Assembly: GCF_032191835.1 (NCBI RefSeq)
Contig: NC_083234.1
Span: forward strand, 1,736,001-1,800,000
Length of the DNA stretch: 64,000 nt
Reading direction: 5' to 3'
From: Heteronotia binoei
Taxonomy: Eukaryota
Made by a program: the position numbers and the translations under genes. The notes under the pieces were generated by a model. That model ran no database searches. It worked only from the letters and a program-made list of their open reading frames with translations, and had not been told where the DNA came from. Every line of letters begins with the position of its first letter. The first letter of the stretch is position 1. Positions 11,901 through 50,600 of this stretch are shown piece by piece.

Positions 11901-14900
11901 GGCGCGAAGACCCCGCCCTGAAGCCTCCAAGGTTGGGCCCCGCTGCCTGCCGGCCTGGGCGGGAACAGCCACCGGCGCTCCCAGTGCAGGTCCAGGGAAG
12001 GGAAGGGGGGGGGGGTTTAGTTCCTTGACCACTGCCCGGTTCGCTGCCTGCTGGCCAGAGCCTGAGGGGAGAGGCAGGTTGAGGATGCCCCTCCCTCCTT
12101 TCCTTTCCTCTCCTGTCCCCTCCTGTCCTGTCCTCTCCTTTCCTTTCCTCTGCTCTCCTCTTCTCTCCTTGCCTTTCCTCTCCTCTTTTTTCCTCTCCCT
12201 TCCGGTGAGGGGGCACTCAGAGGGCCACTCCCTTGTCAGAATGCAGGTGCTCAGCTGCTCCTGGGGCTCTTGTGTGATTTGGAGGGGGGGGGGTCGCTTC
12301 TTCCAAGGGTAATTCACCAGATGGCCTTTTCCTGCATGGCCAGAGGACCCCTCCCCTTCTCCTGGGCACTTGTCTTCTGCAGCTCTTGGAAGGAGAGGAC
12401 TCTGCGCTCCCCCCCTCCCGCTCAGGCAGGCCCTGACCAAATTCTGCTGGGAAGTTCTCCTGCCTGACTTGAGGCCCTCTGATTTCCCCAGCAGCAGCTC
12501 TGCAGTTGTGGAACCTGAGCCTGTCTCTCTCCGGCAATGACTTGTGGGTGACTCTGGGGGAGGTCTACAAAGAGCTGCACCTGGGCAGGTGGGGCCACTA
12601 CCAAGTCTATGTCCGGAGGGAATCCAACGACACCCAGGTGAGGCTGCAGCAGAGGAACCCTTGGCCTTGGGGTGGTGGGTGTGTTCTTGGCAAGGCTCCA
12701 TCCAGCTCCCCGTCCTAGCCCGGCTTTCCTTCTGGAGGACCCCCCCAGGCCTTCTCCTTTTTGCCCAGAGGAGCCTTGCCCTGGGGGGGAGGGGCAGGGG
12801 GGTCTCCAAGGAGGCAAAACCAGCAGCCCACGAGGTGGGAAAGCTGCTGCCGGAGAGAGGAGCATCACACCCTCCTGGCCCCTCCGCCTTCTGCCCCACA
12901 GTACATGCTGGTGCAAACCAACCGGAGGTTTAAGCTGCCTGAGGTGTTGTGGGGTGAGCGGTACTGTGTCAGCGCGGAGCTCCACCTGCCCTCCTGGCCC
13001 AATCCTCCCCATCGGACAGAAGAGCAGTGCATCTCGACCCCTCCCCCAACCGGTGAGTCTGCAGCCCGAGACCCCAGGGCCACCCCCAGCCTCCTGGCCA
13101 GGGCCTGCCATCCAGGACAGAGCAGGAGAAGGACAGGCGGGGTCTCTTCTTGCCTGGCTGAAGGGGACACCGTGCATCCACTCCCTCCCCCCTCCTCCCC
13201 TTGGAGTTTTCTGCACGCTGCAGGAGCCGGCGCTGCTCAGAGGTTGGGAGGAACTGAGTGGCAACCCCAGATGCTGCAGCACAGTCTCTGGCTCTGTCCA
13301 TCTGTCCTTCCCAGCCTCTCCGGCGGCTGCCTCCTGGCTCCCTTCCCCCAGCAGCTGCGCCCGGGGCCCTCTTCTCCAGGCAAGGGGCTGGCCAGCCTTC
13401 TCGCCTGCTGCAACGGCCTGTGTGTGACACTCTGTTTGCAGACAGCGGCAGGGCCACGGCCATCCTCGGCTTGACCCTTCTCAGCCTGGTGGCTCTTGGC
13501 ACGCTAGCAGTGGCCTGGGGCTGTGCTTATGTGAAGAAGCCCACGGAGACCCCGTCGGTGCTGGTAAGTGCTTCCCTTGCTGCGGCCTCCAGCTTCTGAG
13601 GCCAAGCAGTCAGCCCACAGGGGGCACTAGAAGGCGGCCACCTGCCTCCCAGGCCCTGGCCGGGTCCTCAAAGCATCCCTCTCGCCTTGCTGTTCAACAG
13701 ATCCTTGTGTTGTTCTTTTGGAAACATCCAGAGACCAGCTTGCAAAGTAAAGATACGAGATACCATCATACCAATAATAGCCATTATGTTGGCAACATGA
13801 AAACCAGCCAGGAGCAAGAAACAAGGCGCCTGGTCCCTGACCACAGTGAAGGATCTGGCAGCAATAATTCCTAACATTGATGATTGTTGGAAATGCCCAT
13901 TTCTGACTGCTGTTGGGACATCTTGCTCTCTGGCGTGTCAGTTCTTGAGCAGCAAGAGGGGCAGAGAGAGGAAACAGTGATTGTGGTTTTTAAATCATTA
14001 TTTTACTTACATTGTAAGGTGCCTTGATTTCCACAAGGGAGAGAGGTGACTGATAGATGCTAAATCTTGATAAATGCCTGACAGGGCTGTTATCCAACCG
14101 ACGTTCCTGTGGAACACGATCCTCTCACTTAGCCTTTCTCTGCACAAGGTTTCCACAAAGCATAGTACCATCTCAGTAGCTTGGAGAGGGCTTGCTACAT
14201 TTCTGTAAGTGCAGAGCCTGTGTTTGAGGAAGCGACTCCATTCGTTAGGGCTGAGCCTGATAAAGAGGGGCAAAGCTTGGCTTGTACTTGTCAGGCAGGC
14301 ACAGCTGCGCAGGCGGAGGGTGGACACAACCCGAGGCTTCCACAGAGAGAGAGACAGACAGACAGACTCCACGATAGGCAGCTTTCCTGCTTGCCTCTTT
14401 GGCAGGAGGGCTGTGTTGCAGAGCCAGATTAACAATTAGGCCAAATAGGCACTGGCCTATGGGCCCCCATGCCTTTAGGAGCCCCAGGCCAGTTTCCCCC
14501 CTCCTTGCAGCCCTCCCAGCCTGCACATGCAGCCAGCAAATGAGCCGTTCTTTGCCCAACTTGCCTGGCGTGGCATCGTTACCCAGTTTGCCTCTCCCCC
14601 CCCCCTCAGCTTAGTCAAAGGGGCTTTTGAGAAGGGGCCTGCAGGCTGCAGCAGGGCAGGGGTCAGACTCTGAGGTAATGGGGGGGGGCTGGGGCCACCA
14701 CAGGGTTTAATCCACGCTGCTGCGTTCTGAAGGAACTGAGGGGGGCGGGTCTGCATCAAATAGCTCAGTTTCTGCTTCTGAGGTCAGAACTCTCTTTGGG
14801 TTACTGAGCTGGGATTTGGGCATTAAACTTCAGGACTTTTGCTGTCATGTCAAACAATTGTCTACATGTGGCCCCGCTTGGGGCTGTTATAATGAATGAA

Positions 14901-33500: not shown

Positions 33501-36188
33501 AAATGGCATCTTCTGGAGGAGGCAGAGGAGCAAAGTAGCCCCCATTCCCCCTCCCTCCCGGGGGAGGGGGGGAATCACTGGGCTCCTCTCTGGCTTCCTA
33601 GGTGTTCTACTACCACGAGCAGCCTTACCCAGCGACGACAGGACACTTTGTGGGCCGAGTGAGGTGGGACGGCAACATCCAGAAGAGCGACGCCTCCCTC
33701 ATGCTTTGGAATGTGAGCCCGGCTGACAACGGCACTTTCCAGTGCCAGGTGAAGAACCCCCCAGACGTGGATGGCAACATCGGGGAGATCCAGCTGGCGG
33801 TTGTGCTGAAAGGTGTGTAGCCTCTGCTCTGAGGCAGGGAGGGGCCACAGCTGGGGCAAAGGGGCTGCTGCTTGCCAATCGCCTCCCACTCGCCTCGACT
33901 TGCCTCTCTTGGCAGATTGGCTGCAATTGCCAGCAGCACTTCAGCCATGACAGAGTTAAAGTGCTGTTGAGCATAAACTGGATGTCACCAATGGAGAAAG
34001 TTTCCTGGATTAGAGAAGGTGGCATTTAGTGGGATTGCTGTGGTCTTTAGTCTGTCTTTGGCTGATCAGTATTTAGGTTAGAAGATGTGCTTTTGGTCAC
34101 ACAGGCGACTCCTTGGTGTTCTTTGTTCTGAAAGCTATAAGGAAAGACGGAGTGGCCACCTTGGCCTTTGCCGGGTCATCGTTAGGATGTAGCTCTAGAA
34201 AGCTCCAGGGTGTTCTCATTTCCATCCAAAGGTATCCCCTCCCTCTTGTCTTGATAGATGACTTTGATGCTGGAGCCTCCGTTTCCCTTTGCTCTGCTCC
34301 ACTGACCTCCCCCCTCCTCTCCTCCCTGCACAGTGACCTTCTCGGAGATCCACATCTTGGCCCTCCTCATTGGCTGTACCTGCCTGTTCATGATCCTCCT
34401 GGTGGTGGGGGTGGTCCTCTGTCGCCAGCAGCGCAGGAAGCGGCAAGAGAAGAAGCTGGAGATGGTGCAGGCAGGGCGGTAAGGAGGGGCGCATCTGGGG
34501 AGCCATCGGGCAGGGCTTGGCCCCGGGCGGCATCTGTACATCCGTCCTTCGGAGGCAAAGCAGGGAGGGGAGGGGGGGGAGTTGAGACTGGTGAATGCCG
34601 TGACTAGGAATTGGGAGCACCGGAGTCCACTCCTCTGGCTCTCGGGGAAACTTGGCCAGGTCCCAGATGGGCCCCAGAGGGGAGGGTACAGTGAGCAGAG
34701 GGCGGCAAGGTGGAGGCAAAGGGAAACCGCAGAGGGCCAAAGGACACGGGGGAGGGGGGGAGGGGCCTAGGTGTGAGTGAGCCCCGTGGGGTGGCCGGCT
34801 GTGAGGCCAGATGTTAGCCAAAATGCCCTCCAAACGAGGTTGGGGAATTAGTTAGGTGGGCACCTGGCTCACTAGGAATCTTTTACCAATGTATACAAGA
34901 ATACACATCCACAAAAGTGATGCTTAAATAATGGGACTCTAATTTAGTAAAACCAATTACAATTTATTAAGAAAAATATAGTCTTCCATACAAGATAAAA
35001 ATACACATACAATCATACACACACACACAGTCCTAAGAAATATAGATAGATGGATAGGGAAACATATAAGGGTAGACACACAGGGTAATATTTACCATCG
35101 TAGTCTTCGAGGAAGGCTCCAATGGCGACATAAGAGGACGGGGGAAATGGACCCAAAACTATGGCCAGAATTGGGGATGGATCTAGACAGCAGAACTGGG
35201 ATACTGTTAGATGCACACCTGTGGGTAGCTAGTCCACAGGTTATACGGCCTCTCTTGAGCCCTCAGGGGATGGGAGGTATCAGGGAGGAGAAAGGGGAGG
35301 CTCTGCCATGACCATGAAGGCTGGACATTTGCAGAGCCAATGGCGAGTTCCTTGGTTGCACCTAATTGGATACCTGTCTTGACCAATGAGCTTGCCTGGA
35401 TTCTGGGTACCTGAAAGAATCTTCCTGATTAGAACAGGCCATGGGGTGGCTCCGAAATGACAGTTGGGAAAATGAATAGAAGTGATTACTAGGTGGGGAA
35501 CACTTAAGATTAGATGGACTTATCTGAAAAGGTGACAATAGAGAATCAAATACTGGCACCAGTCTTTGTTCTGGGTTTCGTTAGACAAAGTTTTGAGTGC
35601 TCTAGCAGGGTATGCTTGGATAAGCTTGATTGCCTTATGCAAAAGCTGAAGCAGCTATTGGATATGGAGTCAGGAAAGCAAGATGGATTCTGGTGGTGTT
35701 AGCCCTTGGTTCATGGAAAATAGGCTAGAAACTGTTTGCTTGTACAGTTCATGGTGGCATGACTTCCTTTACTGCAGCGGCCAAGACTGGGCACACAAGG
35801 AGCAGAATGCTGCTGCAAAGCTGAGGCGTATAGTATCCACATAAGCCTTAGAAACTGTAAGCAAAGTCCACTTCTTAGAGCAGATGTGTGAGAGTCAAAA
35901 CTCCAGGCACCCTGGCAACCATACTGGTGATCACGATGTCCATATGTATGAAAAGTAGGGGGCTTTCCTTACACATAGCTCAGCTCCCTGCAGGAACAGC
36001 CCCTTGCAGGCTTCCTCCAAGGGGCCTTCTGCCCTTGCCCCACACAGGGCGGCATCATGGGCCCCCTCCCTCTCCCCCCCCCCCCCACTGAGACTCTCTC
36101 TGTTGCATTTAGTGACAGGTCAGAGAAAGCCAAGCTGAAGACAGCTGAGCTGGAGGAAATGACGGTCATGCGTGGAGAGCGAGTCTGA
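30536..36188 (+). CDS. MPZL2: Myelin protein zero-like 2 (EVA1), Ig-V adhesion protein, 218 aa
   Basis: Exons 30536-30593, 31799-31965, 33602-33812, 34334-34478 and 36113-36188 (58/167/211/145/76 nt). Motifs [57 protein letters not shown] and FSEIHILAL. Confidence 0.95.
32200..32715 (+). mobile_element. Degenerate CR1 fragment in MPZL2 intron 2
   Basis: [31 protein letters not shown]. Confidence 0.8.
32721..32990 (-). mobile_element. MIR/Ther1-type SINE (Squam3-like)
   Basis: Reverse complement of the 43444 element. Confidence 0.9.
34860..35900. mobile_element. Possible LTR/DIRS-type remnant in MPZL2 intron 4
   Basis: Abrupt AT-rich block with clustered CCAAT boxes (about 35337-35390). Termini not defined. 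Confidence 0.3.
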
Positions 36189-38805: not shown

Positions 38806-40981
38806 ATGGGCCTCTCGGGGGCGGCCTTCCCGCTGGCGGCGCTCCTGCTGGGTGAGTGCGGGGGGGGGGGGGGGCTCCTCTCCCCGACGTGGCCGGGCTC
38901 CGGCGGGCGCTTGGCTGGCGCGCTCTCTCTCTCGGCCGCCGCCGCCGCCGCCGCCTCCACAAGTGCCGCTCGACGCCGGCTCTGCTGCCACCCCGGCGCT
39001 CTCGCGCAGCCGGAGGGAGGGAGGGAGGCCGGCCGGCTCTCGGTGCCGCCGCCGCCGCCGCTGACCGACCCCTTGCCTGTCGCGTCCGCAGCCGCCGCCG
39101 GAGCGGGCTCGTTGGAGGTGCGGGCGGCGCCCGAAGTGCGGGCCTTCGTGGGCGAGGCGGTGGTGCTGCGCTGCTGGTTCCGCTCCTCCGCGCCCGTCAC
39201 CGAGAAGCTGACCGTCGACTGGACCTACCGGCCGCTGGCAGGAGGGGCGCTGGAGCCGGTGAGCGGGGAGGGGCTAGAGGAGGAAGACCCTCCTGCCGGG
39301 CGGGGGGGGGCGCTCAAAGGCTCACTGTCGCCCCTCCTCCCTCCCTCCCTCCCTGCCGGCAGATCTTCCATTACCAGGCGGGGGCCTACCCGGCCCGGGA
39401 GGGCACCTTCCGCGACAGAATCTCGTGGGCGGGAGATGTGGCCCAGCACGACGCCTCCATCGCCATCGCCAGCCCCACCCTGGAGGACAACGGCACCTTC
39501 ACCTGCTCCGTGAAGAACCCCCCCGACGTCCAGCACACCCTCCCCCACACCCTGCTGACCGTCACCCGGCGAGGTACCCGCAGCAGCAGCCGCCGTCTGC
39601 GGCCTTCGCCTGGCCCTGCTCCGGAGCCCCAGCCTCCGCTTCAGGTCCCTGCCTGGCCGGGCTTTGCGCAGGGCCCCGGCGGCTCCCCCCCTCCCTGGGC
39701 GGCAGAAAGGAAGCCGCCCCGGCCCTGCCTTGCACAGCAGGAGTGGGGGGGAGCCTGAGCCCCCCAGGCTGGGCCTGCACTGGCCAGGGATCCCCCCCCC
39801 CTCCTCCTCCTGGGGTGGGACGGGACGGGACGGGAGAGAGCGCTCTTTCCTGCTCTCCAGGCCGGGCTTCTGGGGCTTTGGCCTCTCTCCCCCTTCCTTC
39901 CTTCCTTCCACAGGCGCCTCCTTCCAGCTGACGGCGGCCGGGTTGCTCTCGCTGCTGGTCTTCCTCCCCTCCGCTCTCGTGGCGGCTCTGCTGCTGGTCA
40001 GGATGGGCCGGAAGTCCGGGGTGCTCCACGGCGGGAAGAAGGTGGTCTCCCCCCAGAAGTCCTCCATCGAAGTGGCTGACGAGTGAGCGAGAGCCAGCAG
40101 GGGGCGCTCTTGGGTCACGCATGGCGGGGAGTTTGTTGGGAAAGCAAACGAGGCTTGCTGCGCCTCCTGGGTCTTGGCACCGGCACCGCACCTGGCTGGG
40201 TGTCCTTGGATCAGGAGCACGCAAGGGGTCTGGGGGCCAGGTGCAAGGAGAGCAGACTGGGCCTGGGTGAAAGTCCCTCAGAGTCAAGCAGGGCTGGATG
40301 CCAGAAACAAATTGTGTTCCCACCTGCCTCCTGTTGCCCCCGAAATGTGTCCGACCTGCCCCCTGACAGCTGGCCCCAGGGGGGCTCCAGAGATGGAGGC
40401 CTGGCGCTGACCCCTTCCGGCTCCATCCTTCGACCGCTGGGCTGGCGGAGGCATCTTTGGGGGCCGTGCAGAGAGGTCTCTGTGGCCCTTCCCCCCAACA
40501 CACACACATGCACCTCTGCTTGTCAGACTGGAGAATGGGCCGTGGGGCAGGAGCAGGGTTCCAGTGCCTTGCCTGGGAGTCCCCTGTGGGCCAGGCTGGG
40601 GGGGGGGGGGCAGAGGGAGCTGGTGCTGCTGAGCTGACCTGCTGTGTCTTACTCCTGCAGACTGGAGCGACCGGGCTGTGTGGGGCGACTGGCCAGCAGG
40701 TGTCTGCAGTGCCTGGTAAGCATCAGCGAGCTCCTGGCAGGCTCAGCATGTGGGGAGCGCAGCCCCATGTCCGTTGGTGGGGGGCATTTTGCAAAGGGTG
40801 TGGCAGGGGCTGTGGGGTGTGTCCAAGGGGGCTCTTCAGGGCATCTCAGCAAGGAAGGTCCGCTTGCTGCCTCCCGCTAGCGCTGCTGCTGCTGGGTCTG
40901 TGCTGAGTGGCACCTCTGAGAATCCAGATCTCTTTTTGTGTCTCGTTCATTCAGGACACAGATGAGGAAGACCCTTACTGA
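38806..40981 (+). CDS. MPZL3: Myelin protein zero-like 3, Ig-V protein, 224 aa
   Basis: Exons 38806-38851, 39092-39258, 39363-39573, 39914-40082, 40661-40715 and 40955-40981. Motifs KLTVDWTYRP, IFHYQ..GTFRDRISW, DNGTFTCSVKNPPDVQH, LLSLLVFLPSALV, RMGRK, KSSIEVADE, RCLQCL and DTDEEDPY*. The start codon is the least certain element. Confidence 0.94.
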
Positions 40982-41783
40982 CTGACGGACGGACAGATGA
41001 AGACGGCCTTTGAAGCTGACCTCTGCCAGTCCCTATCAAGGGGGGAAGTCCAGCCCTGGACTTCTTTACATAGGCGAAAAGCAACGGTGTTGCTGGACAA
41101 TTTTAGAAATCTGACCTGGGGGAAATAATAGGGATTCTGCTGCTTCTTCCTCCTTCTTTGTCCATTCCTCTTTGACATCTTGCTCTGCATTCCCAGACTG
41201 AGCTCTCCCCACCCATTGGGCCGGCAGCCTTTGGACAAGCGCTCTTCTGCGCCAAGGCTGGGGCTAGAGCCGTGCCTCCGTGGGCTGCGTGGGTCCCCAT
41301 GTGGCTTGTGAGAGCAGCCCGTGGTCACTCAGTCCTCCTTTTCCCATCTTGGCTGCTGGGCTTGGCAAGGTCCGAGGGCTTCGTGGGGCCAGCTTGTCCG
41401 GGGGGGGGATGGGCTTCTGGTGAGGGTGGGGTCAGTGGAGCTGCAGGCTTCCGTTCACCTGCGAGGAGAGGAGGCCAGAGCTGGCTCAGAGAGGGCTCCT
41501 GCAGTGGCCCAGAGAGATGGCTGCAGATGGGAGAGGAGAGGAGCCACTTCCCCTTCCTGGCTGCTGGTTTGTAGGGAAGACAGCTTTCCTTCCCCATTGT
41601 CCCAACGGGCCACAGCTGGGCTTGCCCATTCTTGTAGACGCTGCTTGGTTGCATGAGAAGCTGCACATTGTTGCCTGAGCTCAGAGCCTGGAAGGAGGGG
41701 GGGGGGGCTGGGAAGCATCTCCTCTGCTGCCACAGATGAGGGTGGGGTAGAGCTGCCAGAGGAGCACCGTCTTTCTTGGGACC

Positions 41784-41789
41784 AATAAA
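41784..41789 (+). terminator. Polyadenylation signal AATAAA, MPZL3 3' end
   Basis: First canonical AATAAA noticed about 800 nt after the MPZL3 stop, just before TE-rich DNA. Confidence 0.55.
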
Positions 41790-41904
41790 CACCTTCATAC
41801 CAGCTGAGTGTGCAGTCTTTGTTGTCTGGGTGGGGGAGAACAGCTGGGGACTGGCAGCACTGCTGGTGGTGGAATGGGGGGCCCATTCCTGGTGAATTGT
41901 GCTT

Positions 41905-43435
41905 TGTGGTCATATAATCATAGGACCCCAGGATCAACTAGTGTATGCGCCACTCTCTGCAAATCTTCAGTGTTCTTATCCGCAGTCTCTAGCATCATAC
42001 GAGGCTTTGAATTATTGTCTCGCTCCCCCACGCAATTTAGTTTAAAGCCCTCCTTATTAGGTTACCAAACACCCTTTTCCCTACTGTTGTAAGGTGCAAA
42101 CCATCTCCCGATAGATCACCATCTCGAAAGAATAAGCCATGGTCCAGAAATCCAAATCTTTCCTGACAACACCATCGACATAGCCAGTCATTTATTTGAA
42201 GTATTCTTCTTTCTTGTCCTAAGCCACGACCTTCAACAGGAAGAACTGACGAGAACACAGCCTGTGCAGCCAGCTCCTTCACCTTCTGACCCAGAGCCAC
42301 ATAGTCTTTTCTAATATGTTCAGGGCTATGATGGGCAGTATCATTCGTTCCCACGTGGATCAGCAAAAAAAGATAATAATCCATGGGCTTGATAAATCTT
42401 CCAATCCTTTCTGTCACATCCTGGATGCGTGCACCCAGCAGACAGCAGACCTTTCAGGATGACAAGTCCAGTCGACGCACTTTTGGCTCCACCTCTCTGA
42501 GCAAAGAGTCTCCAATTACCACCACCTTCCTCTTCCTACATTGGGGAGCAGAAGCTCCAGGCTTATTATCCACAGGATCCTTCAAGCTTTACAGAGGCTG
42601 GGGAAGTAGCCCTTGTTCCAATGGTTCAGAATCAGTTATTGTGGGGAAATCCTGAAACCTATTGCTTAGCAGCAGAGGCTCAGAACATCTCCTGATTTTC
42701 TTGCTCCTTCGGCTTACATTTTTCCATGAACCCTCATCCTGTCTTGGATTCTCTTCCAACTGCTGAGATACCACTTCCGCTTCCTTCTCTTATCTTTTCA
42801 AGAGAGCCTCAAGGGTTTTGTCAAGAAAACCCTCACTTTCTTTTATACACTGCAGTGTGGATAATCTTGCCTCCAGTCCCCATATCTTCTCCTCCAGCAG
42901 GGCTACTAACTTATACTTGCTGCAAGTGTAATTGCTGCTACTCTCAGGTAGAAATACAAACATCCCACAGTCTTTATATGTCACTACGTCTGCTCCCTCA
43001 CCAGCCATGCTGCTGCAATCCATCTCAAAATTCTCTTTGTCTTTATTTCCCTGTAAATTCCACTACCAACCGCTGCTTGAGACTACTCGTGAGGAACTAC
43101 CCACCTTCCCAGAGAACCCCCAGGCTAGACCCCCAGGCCAAGAGCCCTTTAGCTCTCACCCTTCAGCTCCCACCAAAGGCTCGGGCCTCTGGCAAGGTGC
43201 AGCCTAATAATGCAAAGAGGGTGGGGCCTCAGTCTGCCCCAGACAACACAGACACTCCCAGTGAACAACAATCACCTACTATCAGCAACAATCACCTACA
43301 GTCCACTCAAAACAAACAGCAGTTCCCCAGCAATCACACAAACTCAGACTCTCAGCAACTTCCCCCAGCTGTTTAGAAAACCAAACACTCAGCCTTGCAG
43401 CCGCACTCCTTTCCCGCTCTCTCCCAGAGCTCATT
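41905..43435 (-). mobile_element. CR1 derivative: 5' monomer, decayed ORF1 (zinc-finger/zipper + SGNH esterase) and CR1-like 3' tail, with no ORF2
   Basis: Minus frames give VVTYKDCGMFVFL..YTCSKYKLVALLEEK, VVVIGDSLL, IHVGTNDT and DGLHLT..RRALN*. Tail-like actagttgatcctggggtcctatgattatatg at 41910-41942. Confidence 0.85.
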
Positions 43436-43443
43436 TCATAAAT

Positions 43444-43722
43444 GAGAGCCAGTTTGGTGTAGTGGTTAAGTGTGCGGACTTTTATCTGGGAGAACCGGGT
43501 TTGATTCCCCACTCCTCCACTTGCACCTGCTAGCATGGCCTTGGGTCAGCCATAGCCCTGGCAGAGGTTGTCCTTGAAAGGGCAGCTGCTGTGAGAGCCC
43601 TCTCCAGCCCCACCCACCTCACAGGGTGTCTGTTGTGGGGGAGGAAGGTAAAGGAGATTGTGAGCCGCTCTGAGACTCTTCGGAGTGGAGGGCGGGATAT
43701 AAATCCAATATCATCTTCTTCA
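43444..43722 (+). mobile_element. Full-length MIR/Ther1-type tRNA-SINE (Squam3-like) with a target-site duplication
   Basis: A box TGGTGTAGTGG, B box GGTTTGATTCC, core cccacctcacagggtgtctgttgtggg and an L2-like tail. TSD ttcataaat at 43435-43443 and 43719-43727. Confidence 0.92.
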
Positions 43723-43849
43723 TAAATGATTTTTTAAATTATTTCTCAGGTCCTTAGAAAGCTGTTTATGGAGCCACCCTGGCTTCTTTAGGCTCCTCCC
43801 ATTTTTCCTTCTCATAGGAATTGTTTGTGATTGTGCTTTCAATATTTAA

Positions 43850-44460
43850 CTTTTAAGAAACTCCCACCCGTCCTCTTTCTCCTTAAGTATTTCTGAGCAC
43901 GGGATTTTACCCAGCATAACTCTTCAGTTTATAAAAATTTGCTTTCCTGAAGTTGAACTTTTATGATTGACTATGTACAGCTATTCCCTTCCCCAAGATT
44001 GTAAATTCCAAAATTACATGATCACTACTACCCAGGGTGCCTGGTACTTTCACCCTGTCAACCAGTCCTTCCCTGTTGGTGAGCATGAAGTCCACAATAG
44101 CAGATCTCCTTGTTCCCCTTTCTACTTTCTGGAAAATGAAGTTGTCAGCAAGACAAGTCAGGACTTTATTTGATCTTTTGTTTTTAGTAGAGTTGGACTT
44201 CCAACAGATATCTGGGTAACTGAAATCTCCCATGACCACCGTGTCCATCTCTTTGAGAACTTTGTAAGCTGTTCTATGAGTGGCTCCTCCAAGTGCTCTG
44301 CCTGGCTTGGTGGTCTACAGCAGACCTCCACCATAATATCACCATTATTTCTTACTCCTTTTCTTTTTACCCAGAGACTCTCAATTGAACTGCCATGCTC
44401 AGATTCACTAATTTCCTCACAAGTATATACCTCCTTCACATATAATGTGACATTTTGAGA
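43850..44460 (-). mobile_element. CR1 ORF2 endonuclease fragment
   Basis: ESLWVK..CCRPPSQ, VVMGDFSYPDICW and LGSSDHVILEF. Confidence 0.9.
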
Positions 44461-44779
44461 AACTCATCACCACGTGTGGTTTAGGTTCTGCTGGTAAATC
44501 ACCAACATAATGAGTTATGTTAGTATACGTAATGAGAGTGTGAGAGGTGGCAGAAGACCTCTGAGAGGGAGCAAAAGGCGCTCATGGCCTCTTGACTTCC
44601 AACTGTAACTTGTTTATTCCTTTGTTTCTTCAAAGGTATGTTCTGCCCTCCCCATGAGCAGGCTCAGGACAGATTGCAAGAGCCACTCCAACGATAACAA
44701 TTCAAAACAAGCATAACAAATAGATAAAACCATTAAAAACAAGGAATTATAAATCAAGACCAGATGGCACTGCTTGAGT

Positions 44780-46135
44780 TAAAGAATCATAGAGTTGAAA
44801 TGGAGCTCCAAGGTCATCGTGTCCAACCCCCCCCCACACACAATGTGGGAGATCCACAAACACCTCTCCACACAGGCACCTGAAACAGCTGCTCACACCC
44901 AGAAAACGGCATAATGATAATGATAACCCCCCAGGATCCCTGGGGCCAAACTGGCCTGGAGAAAAATTGCTGCCTGACCCCAAAGTGGCCACCATCATTT
45001 CCCTGGATGTGTCAGGAATGGCCATGAGAACTCAGCCCTCCTGCCCTCCCTCCCGTGAGCTGCCTCATTCTCAGGATCAGCCTTGCTGTCAGGTGGCCAT
45101 CGATCCTTTCTTTAAAACCTCCAAAGAAGGAGAGCCCATCACCTCCTGAGGAAGCCTGCTCCACTGAGGAACAACTCTGTCAGGAAATTCTTCCTAATGT
45201 TTAGTCAAAAACTCTTCTGATATAATTTCAACCTGTTGTTTCTTGTCTGACCTTCTGGGGCCTTAGAAAACAATTCTGCACCATTCTCTATGACAGCCCT
45301 TCAAGTACTTGAAGATGGTGACCCTATCACCTCTCGGCTGCCTCCTCTCCAAGTTAAACATCCCCAGCTCCTTCAGCCTTTCCTCATAAGACTTGGTCTC
45401 CAGACCCCTCACCATCTTCGTCACCCTCCTCTCGACCCATTCCAGCTTGTCTAGATCCTTCTTAAAATGTGGTGCCCAAAACTGAGCACAATACTCCAGG
45501 TGAGGTCTTACCAGAGCAGAGTAAAGTGATACCATCACTTCACGTGATCTGGACACTAGACTTCTGTTGATACAGCCCAAAATTGCATTTGCCTTTTTAG
45601 CCACCGCATCACACTGTTGACTCCAGTTCTGTGTATGGTCCACTAAGACCTCAAGGTCCTTTCCGCACATACAACTGTGAAGACACGTCTCCCCCATGCT
45701 ATAATTATGCATTGGGGTTTTCCAACCAAAATGCAGAAGACACCCCAGCCTGTCAAAATCACCTATAACCTGTATCTTTCTTCTTGTGTGTTTGCAACTC
45801 CTCCCAGTTTAGTACCATTTGCAAATGTAATAAGCATTCCCTCTATTCCTTCATCCAAATAATTGATAAAGATGTTGAACAAAACAGGTCCCAGGACAGA
45901 TCCCTGAGGCACTCCATTTGTCACTCCTCTCCAAGAGGATGAGGAACCATTCACAAGCACTCTTTGGGCGCAATCTGTCAACCAGTTACATAGACCCACC
46001 TAACAGTAACAGGATCCAAACCACATCTTACCAACTTGTCAACAAGGATAGTATGTGGAGCCTTCTCAAATGCCTTCCTGAAATCAAGATAAGCGATGTC
46101 TGCAGCATCCCCCTGATCCAACCAGGTAGTTACTT
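44780..46135 (-). mobile_element. CR1 RT C-terminal region and 3' UTR
   Basis: [36 protein letters not shown] and YEERLKELG. Tail aatcatagagttg at about 44785. Confidence 0.92.
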
Positions 46136-46699
46136 GAATATTTATAAAGATATTAACCCAAACAGGTCCCTTGTTCCTCATCCTCTTTGGACCACAATGG
46201 CTCCGGTCAGAGTCTTCTGGTCAGAAAAAGGAATGGCTCTCTTGACTGACAGCTGATCTTGATCCCAGGGTCTTGAAGGCCGCCGTCGCCAGTGTCCGAG
46301 ATGCTGCGAAGGGCCCTCTGACTGCAAACACAGTGGCGAGGTCTGGCCGGAGCCATCCCTAAATGGATCAGAATCCTAAAGGAATAAGCGCATTGCTTGT
46401 TTAGAGGTCTGAAAGCAGCGTCACCCCAGAGTCGGAAGCGACTGGTGCTTGCACAGGGGACCCTTCCTTTTCCTGTTGACAAGTTTGCCTTTTCCCTTCG
46501 GTAAGAGGAATCCTGAAACTGCTTCTTGCTTGGAAAGCTGTGCAGGCTGGTTTTCTTGGGAACAGGTTCTCTCTCTCAAATTCCGCCCTTCCTGCCAGTT
46601 CCCTCCCTCCCCGTCGAGCCAGGCGGGATGGGAGTCGGAAGAGAGGTTCCTGAGATTCCCTGGCAGGCACCAAGGGGGGAAGTGGGGCGCCGCGCCTGG

Positions 46700-49600
46700 C
46701 CAGAGTGGGAGGGAAGAGGAAGGCCTTGCGGGCCTCTGGGCTAGCGCGTCTTGCTCCTTGCAGCTGCGCCTGGGCTGGAGGGAGCGCTCCGAGGACGGCA
46801 GCGGAGGGGTGGTTTCCCCCCTGGGACCGCTGCACCTAATACTGTCCAGTCGCCGTTTCGTCCCACCCCACCCACCCAGCCAGGCTTGCCTCGGAGCCTG
46901 CCCCGCTGCCTTTCCTTCCGCCCCCCTCTCCTCCTGCCTCCGTCTGCAGCTCCTCTCTCTGCTGCGGCTGCCCCGGACAGATGGACTCTGGAGCGGCCTC
47001 CCCCCTCGCCCCCCGCAGACAAAGCAGCTGTTCCCAGGGCGCGGAAGGCCGGTGGTTGCTGCCTCGGTGGCCAGGCGGCTGCCAGGGACCGGTCGGGGGT
47101 GGCCCCGGCCCTTCTCCGCTTGCGGCTCCGCGCCTTCTCCCTTGAAGGGGGGGCGGGCAGGGCAGGCTGGCGTGGGGGTGGCAGCCCCGCCTCCTCCCCG
47201 CAGCGCGCCCCACCGGGCCAGGAAAGGGGCAGCGGTGGGTCTTGGGCTGCCGTCGGGGCCAGGCAGGGCGAGGCAGCGGGGAGGGGCGGGGAGCGCTTGG
47301 CTCTCGCAGCAGGTGAGAGCAGCCGGGCCGGCAGCCGCTCAGGAGGCGGGGAGGAGGGGGGCGCAGCCCGCAGAAGGGCTGCCTCGGTCGGCAGACGCTC
47401 TCTTGTTTCACGTTGCCTCCCTCCGCGAGTTTTCCAGCGCAGGCGGCTGGCTTTTTCCCAAGCGCAGAACCGTCCATCCTTTGCCCAAAATTGTCCGACT
47501 AGGCAAGAGCGGCGGGGGGTAGGGGCCGCCTGGCGGGGGGGCGCCCACACCACTGGCCCCTGGCCGCCGGCCTCCGCCGCTCGCCCTAAGGCGCAGGAAG
47601 GGAGGCGAGGAGGAGGGTCTGCAGCAAGCAGCCGCAGTGGAGAGGCAGCTTCGCGGCAGAGGGGGTGAGAGTGCGACCCCCGCCCTCCGGGCAACTGCCT
47701 GGCCTGAGCAGCCCCTCCCTCGTTCCCGGGCTTGGGCCGAGCCTTTCATCTGCGTCGGGGGAGGGGAGGGGAGGCAGCCCCCCGAGAAAGGCTCCCAGGC
47801 CCCGTCGAAGGGCAGAGGAGCGGACCTCCTCCGGGCCTGAGGGAGTCTCCGCTGGCTCTCTCTGCTCTGCTGCCTTGGCCCCCGGGCGTGGCTGCAAGGG
47901 AGCGGCGGAGTGCCCGCCCCGCCCCAGGGCTGCTTCCGCCTCTGGATGGAAAGGGGCTGCAGCCAGTGGCCCCCCTCGGGCGGGGAGTCTGTTTCCCCCT
48001 GAAAGACAGCGGCCTCAAGGATGGCGGGAAGAAACGCTTGCCCCGTTGGCTGAAGGGAAGCCTGAAGCCCGGGGGCGGGGGGCAGCAGAGGCAGGCCAGA
48101 CTCTGGGCCCCTGGAAGGCAGGTAGGCAGGAAGGATCTCCTGCCTGGATCCTGAGCGAGGCGCTCTTGCTGGGCGGCCAACCTCCAGTCGGGGCCTGGAG
48201 ACCTTCCTGCATTGCTGGCCACTGGGCTCCAGGCCAGCCCGGGAGGGACCGGCCTTCCCTCGCAGGAGATGGCTGCTGGGGTGGGGTGGGGGGGCTTCCT
48301 GCCCTCCTAGTCTGGGGGCCCTGCCCGACCCCTGGCTAGGCTGGCGAGGGCCGCGGAGGGGGGAGTTGGGGAGGAGAAGGTTTTCGCGCCCTCCCGCGTC
48401 CCCTGCCTGATCCGCCAACCGCAGAGTTTACCCGGCGGTCCCCCCTTTTTTGCGAGCGCTGGCTCGGGCCGGCCATCTTGCAGCCTCAGCAATAGCACCA
48501 TGCCCGGCTGGGGGACGGAGAAGCCCCGCGCCTGACCCCCCCCCCTCCGCCCTCCGCAGCTCCGCCGCAGCATGAGCCCCCCCGGCGACCCCCGCCTCGG
48601 CCTGCCCGCCCTGGCGCTCCTCGGCCTCCTCGTGGCTCCGGGTAAGGGGAGGCGCCGCTGGGCAGGGGCGGGCGGAGGGCACGTGGGGGGCGCCTCTTCC
48701 CTGCCTGAAATCGGCCTCCCTTCCCGGGGGTGGAGGGTCGTTTTCACACATGCAGGCCTTCACGTGTTGGCTCTGCCAAGTGTCCGCAGCAGCCCTCCTC
48801 CCTCCCTGCCCGCCGCCCCCCACTGTGCTGCCAGGGACGCGCCAGGCGGCCGCCGGCCCTTCTCTTCCCCTCTCGGACCGGCCGTGGCCCTCCGCGGTGC
48901 TCCTGCAGCCGGGCCTGGGAGGGAGAGGGGGTTGCTGTGGGGCAGAGGCCTGGCTCCACCCTTTGGCCGCAGCCATCCCGCGGAGCCCTCCAGAAGGCCA
49001 CCCCACCCACCCACCCTCGCCCGAAAGGCAGCCCCCCAGATGGCTTTGGGACACCGGCGGGAGGGGGGGCACTGGGCATCGCGAGGGCGGGGGGCACAGG
49101 TGGGCTGGGGGGGACACTCCGCGCGGAAGGGGGGAAGGGGAGAGGCTGCATTTCCCGCTCTGCAGCTGTCCGGGGCAGGGGGGGGGGGGGGAGACAGCGG
49201 CAGGCAAGGGAATCAGCGCAGCCGGAAAGCGGCACTGCAGTTGCCGCAGCCAGCCAGGCTCTGCCGCCGCGCACTGCGGATCCCGCAGCAAGACGCTGCA
49301 AGTCTCTCGCCAATGGCCAGGGCGGGGGCGGGGGAGAAAAGCGGCTGCTGCTTGTGCCCACCCCGCCCTCCCCGCGGCCCTGAAGCTCTCCGCAGTGCCG
49401 GCTGTGCTCGGCGTCAGGCTCCAGCTGGGCCTGGCAGCTGTATCGGCTCCTCCACACCCCGCGCCCCAATTTCTGCAGCCTGCAGGCCCGGGGGACAGAG
49501 AGGGGAGGCCGAGGGCGCCTGAGCCCCGGCAGAGGACAGCGCATCGCCTCAGCAGGGAGGAGGGGCTGCTCGCCTTGCCCCGGGAGAGGAGGGCTAAGGC

Positions 49601-50600
49601 CGGCTCCTTCCCCCCGCCGCCTGCAGGGCCCTGCAGCCTGGCCATGGAAGTCACGGCTCCGAGCACCATCCACGCGCTGAACAGCTCCTCGGCCCGCCTG
49701 GCCTGCACCTTCAACTCCTGCTACCGAGTGACCGAGAAGCAGTTCTCCCTCAACTGGACCTATCAGGAGTGCCACAACTGCAGCGAAACGACGGTGAGGG
49801 GGCCGCAGGGAGGGCGGGGGTCAAGGAGAGCCTCCGGTCCGGGAGCTCTTCAAGCGCCCCCAGGAGGGGCCGGGCCTGCGGGCCCCATCGCCCCCCAGGC
49901 CAGCCCGCCTGGGCCAGTCCCCCCGCCACCCCGCCCCTTGGCTGGCCTTTCCGGAGCCCCCCGCCCCCCCCCCTGGCTCGCCTTTGCCTGACGCTGACCG
50001 CCCCCCCCCCCCTGCCCCCAGCTCCTGCAGTTCCGCTCCAAGGTGCTGCCGGTGGAACAGACCCGCTTCGGGAGCCGCGTGAAGTTCACGGGGAACCTGG
50101 GCAAGTACGACGTGTCCATCACTCTGGAGGACGTGCAGCTGGACGACGAGGGCTTCTACAACTGCTTCGTGCTCAACCCCCCCGACCGGCACCGCGGCCA
50201 CGCCCAGATCCAGCTGCGGGTCATCACGGAAGGTGAGCGCCCCCCTCCCCTCCCCTCCCCTCCTCCCCGCCCCCTCCGGCCCGCCTGGGCTCACCTGCCC
50301 CCTCTGTCTCCCCCCCAGAGCCCCCCGAGCGGGACTCCACCGTGGCCGTGGTGGTGGGCGCCTCCGTGGGCGGCTTCCTGGCCGTGCTCATCCTGGCCCT
50401 CGTGGCCGTCAAGTGTCTGCGGCGGCGGAAGCAGCAGAAGCTCAACACCGACGACCAGAAGACCGAGGAAGAGGGCAAGACCGACGGCGAGGGCAACCCC
50501 GGCGACAACGAGGGCCCCAAGTAGAGCCCCCCCTCCGCAACCCCCGCCCCGCAGCGGGGGAGGAAGCGACGGGCCCGCGGGACTGGCCGGGAAGGGGCCT
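46700..50600. promoter_or_regulatory. CpG island spanning the SCN2B 5' region and gene body
   Basis: Very high GC and CpG density. Candidate upstream donors at 47313 and 47665, acceptor at 48559. Confidence 0.65.
48572..50524 (+). CDS. SCN2B: Voltage-gated sodium channel beta-2 subunit, 217 aa
   Basis: Exons 48572-48641, 49627-49793, 50022-50232 and 50319-50524 (70/167/211/206 nt). Motifs MEVTAP, CTFNSCY (alpha-subunit-linking Cys), QFSLNWTYQECHNC, NPPDRHRGH, DSTVAVVVGASVGGFLAV and TDDQKTEEEGKTDGEGN. Confidence 0.97.

Follow-up and report, generated by a model that had tools for sequence, protein, structure and literature searches.

Absence of JAML from the MPZL3-SCN2B interval of Bynoe's gecko and its probable deletion in the squamate ancestor

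The genes MPZL2, MPZL3, SCN2B, and SCN4B stand in tandem, in that order, on the plus strand of a 64,000-nucleotide stretch of the genome of Bynoe's gecko, Heteronotia binoei (C12:1736001-1800000, in an assembly of 2.63 Gb and 661 contigs), referred to here as the window. The locus raises the question of what became of JAML, the gene for junctional adhesion molecule-like, which a preliminary description of the window reported to be missing from its slot between MPZL3 and SCN2B and to have been deleted in this lineage, possibly together with gamma-delta T cells. Comparison with other reptiles sustains the first part of this proposal, as the slot is empty in the gecko, a cordylid lizard, and a snake and is filled in ostrich, crocodile, and tortoise. 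The gecko interval is very probably an ordinary intergenic spacer left by deletion of the whole of JAML in the squamate ancestor, with JAML absent from both the slot and the gecko assembly.

The gecko interval

The MPZL3 immunoglobulin (Ig) exon is a 100% match to the NCBI protein 'myelin protein zero-like protein 3 [Heteronotia binoei]', and SCN2B is identified by the similarity of its exon to solved structures of sodium channel beta-2 (E 2e-23). The MPZL3 coding end is conserved with those of cordylid, ostrich, and tortoise (32 bp, 40953-40984), and a weak conserved block follows at 41770-41809, corresponding to positions 13930-13969 of the cordylid locus (L014). The only AATAAA or ATTAAA motif within 40000-42300 is the AATAAA at 41784, and the distance from this polyadenylation (polyA) signal to the SCN2B ATG at 48572 is 6.8 kb, as first described; 7.6 kb separate the MPZL3 coding end from the SCN2B coding start.

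A six-frame scan of the window for the V-set motif D.G.[YF].C finds four exons only, all on the plus strand, at 33725 (MPZL2), 39486 (MPZL3), 50145 (SCN2B), and 57329 (SCN4B). There is none in 41790-48570, in agreement with the earlier reading that the spacer has no Ig-domain exon. The window contains no N.

JAML in the slot outside squamates

JAML lies immediately 3' of MPZL3 in ostrich, Crocodylus porosus, and Gopherus evgoodei, so the empty slot is not a general property of non-mammalian amniotes. In ostrich, a 4.2-kb gene starts 5.2 kb after the MPZL3 coding end and is of JAML type, its V domain being split between two exons that are accompanied by a transmembrane exon and a tail; its protein is named 'junctional adhesion molecule-like' by NCBI. 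C. porosus has a 397-amino acid (aa) gene 9.4 kb downstream of MPZL3, which corresponds to JAML isoform X1, a protein of equal length from a contig of equal length, and G. evgoodei has a 325-aa V-set gene 7.7 kb downstream of MPZL3, with a first exon (MRMVPALTLMW..) that matches turtle JAML transcripts P0392 and P0393. The sauropsid slot genes have split V-domain exons, a ..YYYS..GD..DGS..LQ.V..D.GTY.CEIR.. core, and a tail containing a YxxM motif, and in all three respects they resemble mammalian JAML/AMICA1 (mouse structures 3MJ6, 3MJ7, and 3MJ9; ligand CXADR). They differ in domain number: Pfam stretches identify a single V-set domain in the JAML proteins of ostrich (P0123), turtle (P0393), crocodile (P0376), tuatara (P0255), and platypus (P0382), and two in the one therian sequence checked (P0251). 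The two-domain JAML solved for mouse may thus not be the amniote ground state, and squamates depart further in having no JAML at this position.

A JAML protein is also present in tuatara (UniProt A0A8D0GKF2; P0255). It is 46% identical to turtle JAML over 99% of its length and 35 to 43% identical to the other aligned amniote JAML proteins, it carries the conserved EATYxTM and IPAEW tail motifs (TYxTM being invariant in the alignment), and in a tree it falls on the JAML side of the split from MPZL2 and MPZL3 with support of 99/98.

The slot in other squamates

In the cordylid Hemicordylus capensis (Scincoidea; L014), MPZL2 and MPZL3 are followed after 5.9 kb by a gene of 214 aa, and in the snake Erythrolamprus reginae (L015) they are followed after 3.75 kb by a gene of 209 aa. 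The signature ..YVMNPPDRHKG marks each of these genes as SCN2B. The two loci are free of N, and the MPZL3-SCN2B adjacency is contiguous in both, as in the gecko. Searches of the gecko, cordylid, and snake spacers by tblastn with six bird JAML proteins return noise only in the rows of the two queries that were examined (E > 7 in the gecko interval), and the matches that bird JAML does have in the three squamate loci are to the paralogous exons of MPZL2, MPZL3, SCN2B, and SCN4B. The comparison across reptiles proposed in the preliminary description therefore gives JAML in three outgroups and direct MPZL3-SCN2B adjacency in three squamates. Long squamate MPZL3 models (349 to 368 aa) were considered as possible carriers of a JAML-like second domain, and only N-terminal extensions were found in them.

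Searches of the gecko genome and of protein databases

Four six-frame searches covered the whole 2.63-Gb gecko assembly, using as queries the most conserved ostrich exon, the complete JAML proteins of ostrich and tuatara, and a profile built from eight amniote JAML sequences. None of them recovers JAML anywhere in the assembly. The best matches score 41 to 47 bits, and every one examined is a paralogue, the set comprising MPZL1, MPZ, MPZL2/3, SCN2B, SCN3B-like, and nectins 1, 3, and 4-like; the whole-genome profile search has no match in C12:1777790-1784570. Candidates rejected in this way are at C3:134.05 Mb (134052812), which is MPZL1; C5:37.64 Mb (37641890), an MPZL1-like exon; C1:262.38, 262.66, and 262.72 Mb, which are MPZ exons; C12:15.43 Mb, which is SCN3B-like; C12:10.74 Mb, which is NECTIN1; and C1:254.3 Mb and C3:140.3 Mb, which are other nectins. 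Tuatara and ostrich are visibly alike in the most conserved JAML exon, so an orthologue still present in the gecko would be expected to outscore such paralogues. An intact JAML elsewhere in the gecko genome, one of the findings named at the outset as able to overturn the proposed loss, was not among the matches examined.

A HMMER search with ostrich JAML against 1.84 billion cluster representatives gives 27 matches below 1e-30 and 88 below 1e-10. Among the representatives with E < 1e-20 that were identified through cluster look-up or BLAST similarity, there is no squamate JAML; those placed come from birds, turtles, crocodilians, tuatara, mammals including platypus, frogs, fishes, sharks, and cyclostomes. 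When tuatara JAML is the query of a word-index search that includes proteins from read assemblies, the sequences retrieved are from tuatara, turtles, birds, and mammals, and none is from a squamate. Several retrieved proteins were considered as squamate JAML and set aside: P0392 and P0393 (338 aa, 46% identical to tuatara JAML) are turtle, having a first exon in common with the Gopherus gene, and P0251, P0252, and P0395 are mammalian-type two-domain sequences.

Composition of the gecko spacer

The preliminary description of the spacer as CR1 and short interspersed element (SINE) DNA followed by the SCN2B CpG island is accurate, with long interspersed element (LINE) and SINE sequences from about 42000 to 46460 (46.5% GC, CpG observed/expected [o/e] ratio of 0.25) and then an island of 70% GC (Table 1). 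The island ratio lies just below the classical CpG-island threshold of 0.6, and two blocks within the island (47399-47442 and 48379-48424) are conserved with cordylid sequence upstream of SCN2B. The boundary of the repeat block near 46461 is also where loose ends of RNA reads fall.

TABLE 1 Features between the MPZL3 coding exons and the SCN2B V-set exons in the gecko window
Feature	Coordinates	Strand	Basis
MPZL3 coding exons	38806..40981	+	tblastn and exact-word mapping of NCBI H. binoei MPZL3 (P0001); end ..DTDEEDPY, stop 40979-40981
MPZL3 3' untranslated region (UTR)	40982..41810	+	Only canonical polyA signal, AATAAA 41784-41789
LINE (CR1-type) ORF1 fragment, GDSL esterase	42037..43023	-	Pfam PF13472 on 42037-42417, E 3e-7
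High-copy SINE-like repeat	43444..43721 (approx.)	.	Both-strand RNA pile-up, depth 95-1150 in two 200-base bins
LINE endonuclease fragment	43961..44439	-	Pfam PF14529 on 43961-44248, E 4e-8; open reading frames
LINE reverse transcriptase to 3' fragment	45263..46181	-	Pfam PF00078 on 45763-45999, E 9e-8
GC-/CpG-rich island, SCN2B promoter and 5' region	46461..48571	+	GC 0.70, CpG o/e 0.57
SCN2B exon 1	48572..48641	+	ATG at 48572, signal peptide, GT donor after 48641; translation
SCN2B V-set exons	49644..50210 (about 49644-49796, 50022-50210)	+	Beta-2 structure match; DEGFYNC motif at 50145

Along the minus strand, the three LINE pieces run reverse transcriptase, endonuclease, ORF1, the reverse of the order in a single element, and they are thus separate insertions. 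The ORF1 piece has at least 2,536 copies in a first look at the genome, the best being 84 to 88% identical, and the reverse transcriptase piece has at least 10,090, the best being 82 to 90% identical. In the cordylid and snake spacers, nothing aligns with these pieces or with any other part of the stretch from the polyA region to the SCN2B promoter. High copy number, 82 to 90% identity, and the lack of a counterpart in the other two spacers together place the LINE insertions long after the JAML loss. The LINE and SINE fragments are later, gecko-lineage insertions into a spacer that was already free of JAML, and the suggestion that the CR1 cluster marks the deletion scar does not hold, since the repeats are neither as old as the deletion nor common to the cordylid and snake spacers.

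RNA data over 42650-48649, consisting of three raw-read runs and the contig set of a fourth library under the same species label, contain no locus-specific RNA that would point to an unannotated gene. RNA over the spacer covers the repeats only; most reads are 95 to 99% alike and about half pass into sequence that no longer matches, as expected of reads that come from other copies of the repeats. Reads over the SINE-like repeat behave likewise, being mostly 95 to 99% alike and continuing into unlike sequence at 43444 and 43721. Depth is zero at 46650-47650 in the three raw-read runs and is only trace from there to SCN2B exon 1, which itself has trace reads in one run (X15 in both cases). An Rfam scan of the spacer gives only two sub-threshold matches, both rejected as chance. 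As a separate observation, many read joints in 43444-43721 go back by 72 to 113 bases, a pattern suggesting that other copies of the SINE contain internal tandem sub-repeats.

Age of the loss and alternative explanations

In the sequence of events that we favor, the whole JAML gene would have been deleted in an ancestor of living squamates, and what remains in the gecko would be the MPZL3 3' UTR, the later LINE and SINE insertions, and the GC-rich SCN2B promoter. Parsimony points to one deletion on the stem leading to squamates, later than their divergence from tuatara, as the most likely course. Gekkota, Scincoidea, and snakes bracket almost the whole squamate crown, and one ancestral deletion is therefore the parsimonious account of the three empty slots. 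Independent deletions in the three groups are most improbable; they would be in keeping with the fact that no common breakpoint sequence can be defined, gecko and cordylid having no conserved sequence from the polyA region up to the SCN2B promoter, but they demand three clean whole-gene losses that each produced the same adjacency and left no exon remnant.

It is also very improbable that JAML persists in squamates and was missed, having relocated and diverged or lying in unassembled GC-rich sequence. Several circumstances lend themselves to such an account or otherwise count against an ancestral deletion. The locus is very GC rich (58% for the window as a whole, above 70% in the islands), and GC-rich regions are the kind from which genes most often go missing in assemblies. 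JAML evolves fast, as the low identity of the tuatara protein to its amniote relatives indicates, and a very fast-evolving or relocated gene could lie below the sensitivity of the searches. Absence from a whole genome concerns one squamate, the gecko, the cordylid and snake being represented by the slot only, and the sample leaves out Iguania, Lacertoidea, Anguimorpha, and Dibamidae. The main text of Salve et al. 2026 (PMC13005343), who list 53 squamate-lost genes, does not mention JAML. The tuatara evidence consists of a protein model rather than a genomic position, and at residues 130 to 140 or so this model has five unrelated residues in place of the conserved ..EEMVFYYYSN.SVP.. where the second V-domain exon begins; the missing segment may be an annotation or assembly artifact or real early damage, which leaves the intactness of the tuatara gene uncertain. 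Against a missed gene stand the three N-free squamate spacers, each with the same MPZL3-SCN2B adjacency; the expectation that a well-conserved exon should outscore paralogues, which were themselves detected; and the word-index search, which did retrieve turtle transcripts from read assemblies and no squamate ones. Deletion of JAML in the squamate ancestor remains the preferred explanation.

The locus shows three features of segmental gene loss, namely, synteny in outgroups, gap-free adjacency of the flanking genes, and no remnant in the slot or copy in the gecko genome. Squamate segmental losses such as that of IL34 (Salve, Sonal, and Vijay 2026, BMC Biol; PMC13005343) are similar in that an immune-related gene that is conserved and syntenic in bird, crocodilian, and turtle is replaced in squamates by a contiguous, shortened interval with the same flanking genes. 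They differ from the present case in scale, as three loci and one genome are considered here and 261 assemblies with raw reads there, and in that JAML does not appear in the main text. Squamate JAML loss appears to be unreported, though this type of event is known; in the literature searched, no paper deals relevantly with JAML or AMICA1 together with squamates, Anolis, or tuatara.

Possible relationship to gamma-delta T-cell loss

Squamates lack the T-cell receptor gamma and delta loci (TRG/TRD) through deletions, and tuatara retains them (PMC11754216), so this element of the preliminary description is well founded. JAML has the same distribution, being present in tuatara and absent in squamates, and the two losses thus share a branch, with the resolution being that of a single long stem. 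The resemblance to the TRG/TRD deletion (Morrissey et al. 2022, as cited in PMC11754216) extends further: tuatara and other amniotes have the genes, squamates do not, and the loss is by genomic deletion rather than pseudogenization. The TRG/TRD loci, however, encode a lineage-defining receptor, whereas JAML serves as an accessory molecule in adhesion and co-stimulation, is much more widely expressed, and is in a different chromosome region.

The same-branch timing invites the idea that JAML was lost because of, or together with, gamma-delta T cells, TRG/TRD deletion having relaxed selection on a co-stimulator that was then deleted. In mouse, JAML acts through CAR as a co-stimulator of epithelial gamma-delta T cells (PMC12237671, PMC8404475), and the aligned sauropsid JAML proteins all have the PI3K-type YxxM motif in the tail, so that sauropsid JAML plausibly signals in the same way as the mammalian protein, to judge from this motif. 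Neutrophils, monocytes, macrophages, alpha-beta/CD8 T cells, and natural killer cells carry JAML as well (PMC12237671, PMC8404475, and a 2026 preprint). Given this wider expression, its function is not restricted to gamma-delta T cells, and loss of these cells would not remove all selection on the gene. Sauropsid JAML moreover has one Ig domain rather than two. The agreement in timing is a single coincidence, the stem branch spans tens of millions of years, and PMC13005343 reports the loss of at least 53 further genes on it, many with immune roles. The earlier proposal that a gamma-delta accessory toolkit decayed along with the receptor is therefore consistent with the timing but is weakened by the breadth of JAML expression and by the many other losses on the branch. 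A causal sequence from TRG/TRD deletion to JAML deletion is rather unlikely, and we are equally doubtful of the broader form of coupling, in which loss of one partner in CXADR-JAML gamma-delta surveillance made the other dispensable. The link is plausible, with its support coming from timing only, and is unproven.

Squamates are the only vertebrates that the cited papers describe as having no gamma-delta T cells. A clean JAML loss on that branch is a concrete candidate among the changes in their rewired immune system that accompanied the disappearance of these cells, and if the two losses are indeed coupled, squamates would be a natural double knockout of a receptor and its dedicated co-stimulator. 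Myeloid transmigration would be affected too, because in mammals the binding of JAML to CXADR directs neutrophils and monocytes through epithelia, and squamates manage without JAML. Taken alone, this is one more lineage-specific loss of an immune gene, and its weight depends on which cells express sauropsid JAML.

Additional features of the locus and its relatives

The NCBI H. binoei MPZL3 model (P0001, 304 aa) has an Ala/Gly-rich N-terminal extension of about 85 aa (residues 1-85; window 38806-39261) that cannot be aligned to turtle MPZL3. Similar extensions are present in several other squamate models, and the start codon may be over-predicted in the GC-rich 5' region. The gene upstream of MPZL2 in the cordylid (L014 1-2011) and the snake (L015 535-3508) is of CD3 type and on the opposite strand (Pfam Ig_4/Ig_5).

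In the crane Grus japonensis, a protein named 'sodium channel subunit beta-2' (P0002) is 504 aa long, more than twice the size of the 209- to 215-aa SCN2B proteins, and is 66% identical to the MPZL3 Ig exon; the model probably fuses neighboring genes of the MPZL3-JAML-SCN2B cluster. Two frog proteins named 'MPZL1' (Ascaphus P0387 and Rhinophrynus P0265), each with two V domains, score well with a JAML query; they were rejected as JAML, as a tree groups them with gar MPZL2 (support 98/96), and their naming and orthology look unsettled.

Three MPZ-type Ig exons lie within about 335 kb on C1 of the gecko assembly (262382404, 262662510, and 262716364), two of them with identical scores, and a second MPZL1-like exon is on C5 (37641890) besides MPZL1 on C3. 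These C1 and C5 exons may reflect duplications of the myelin P0 family in the gecko.

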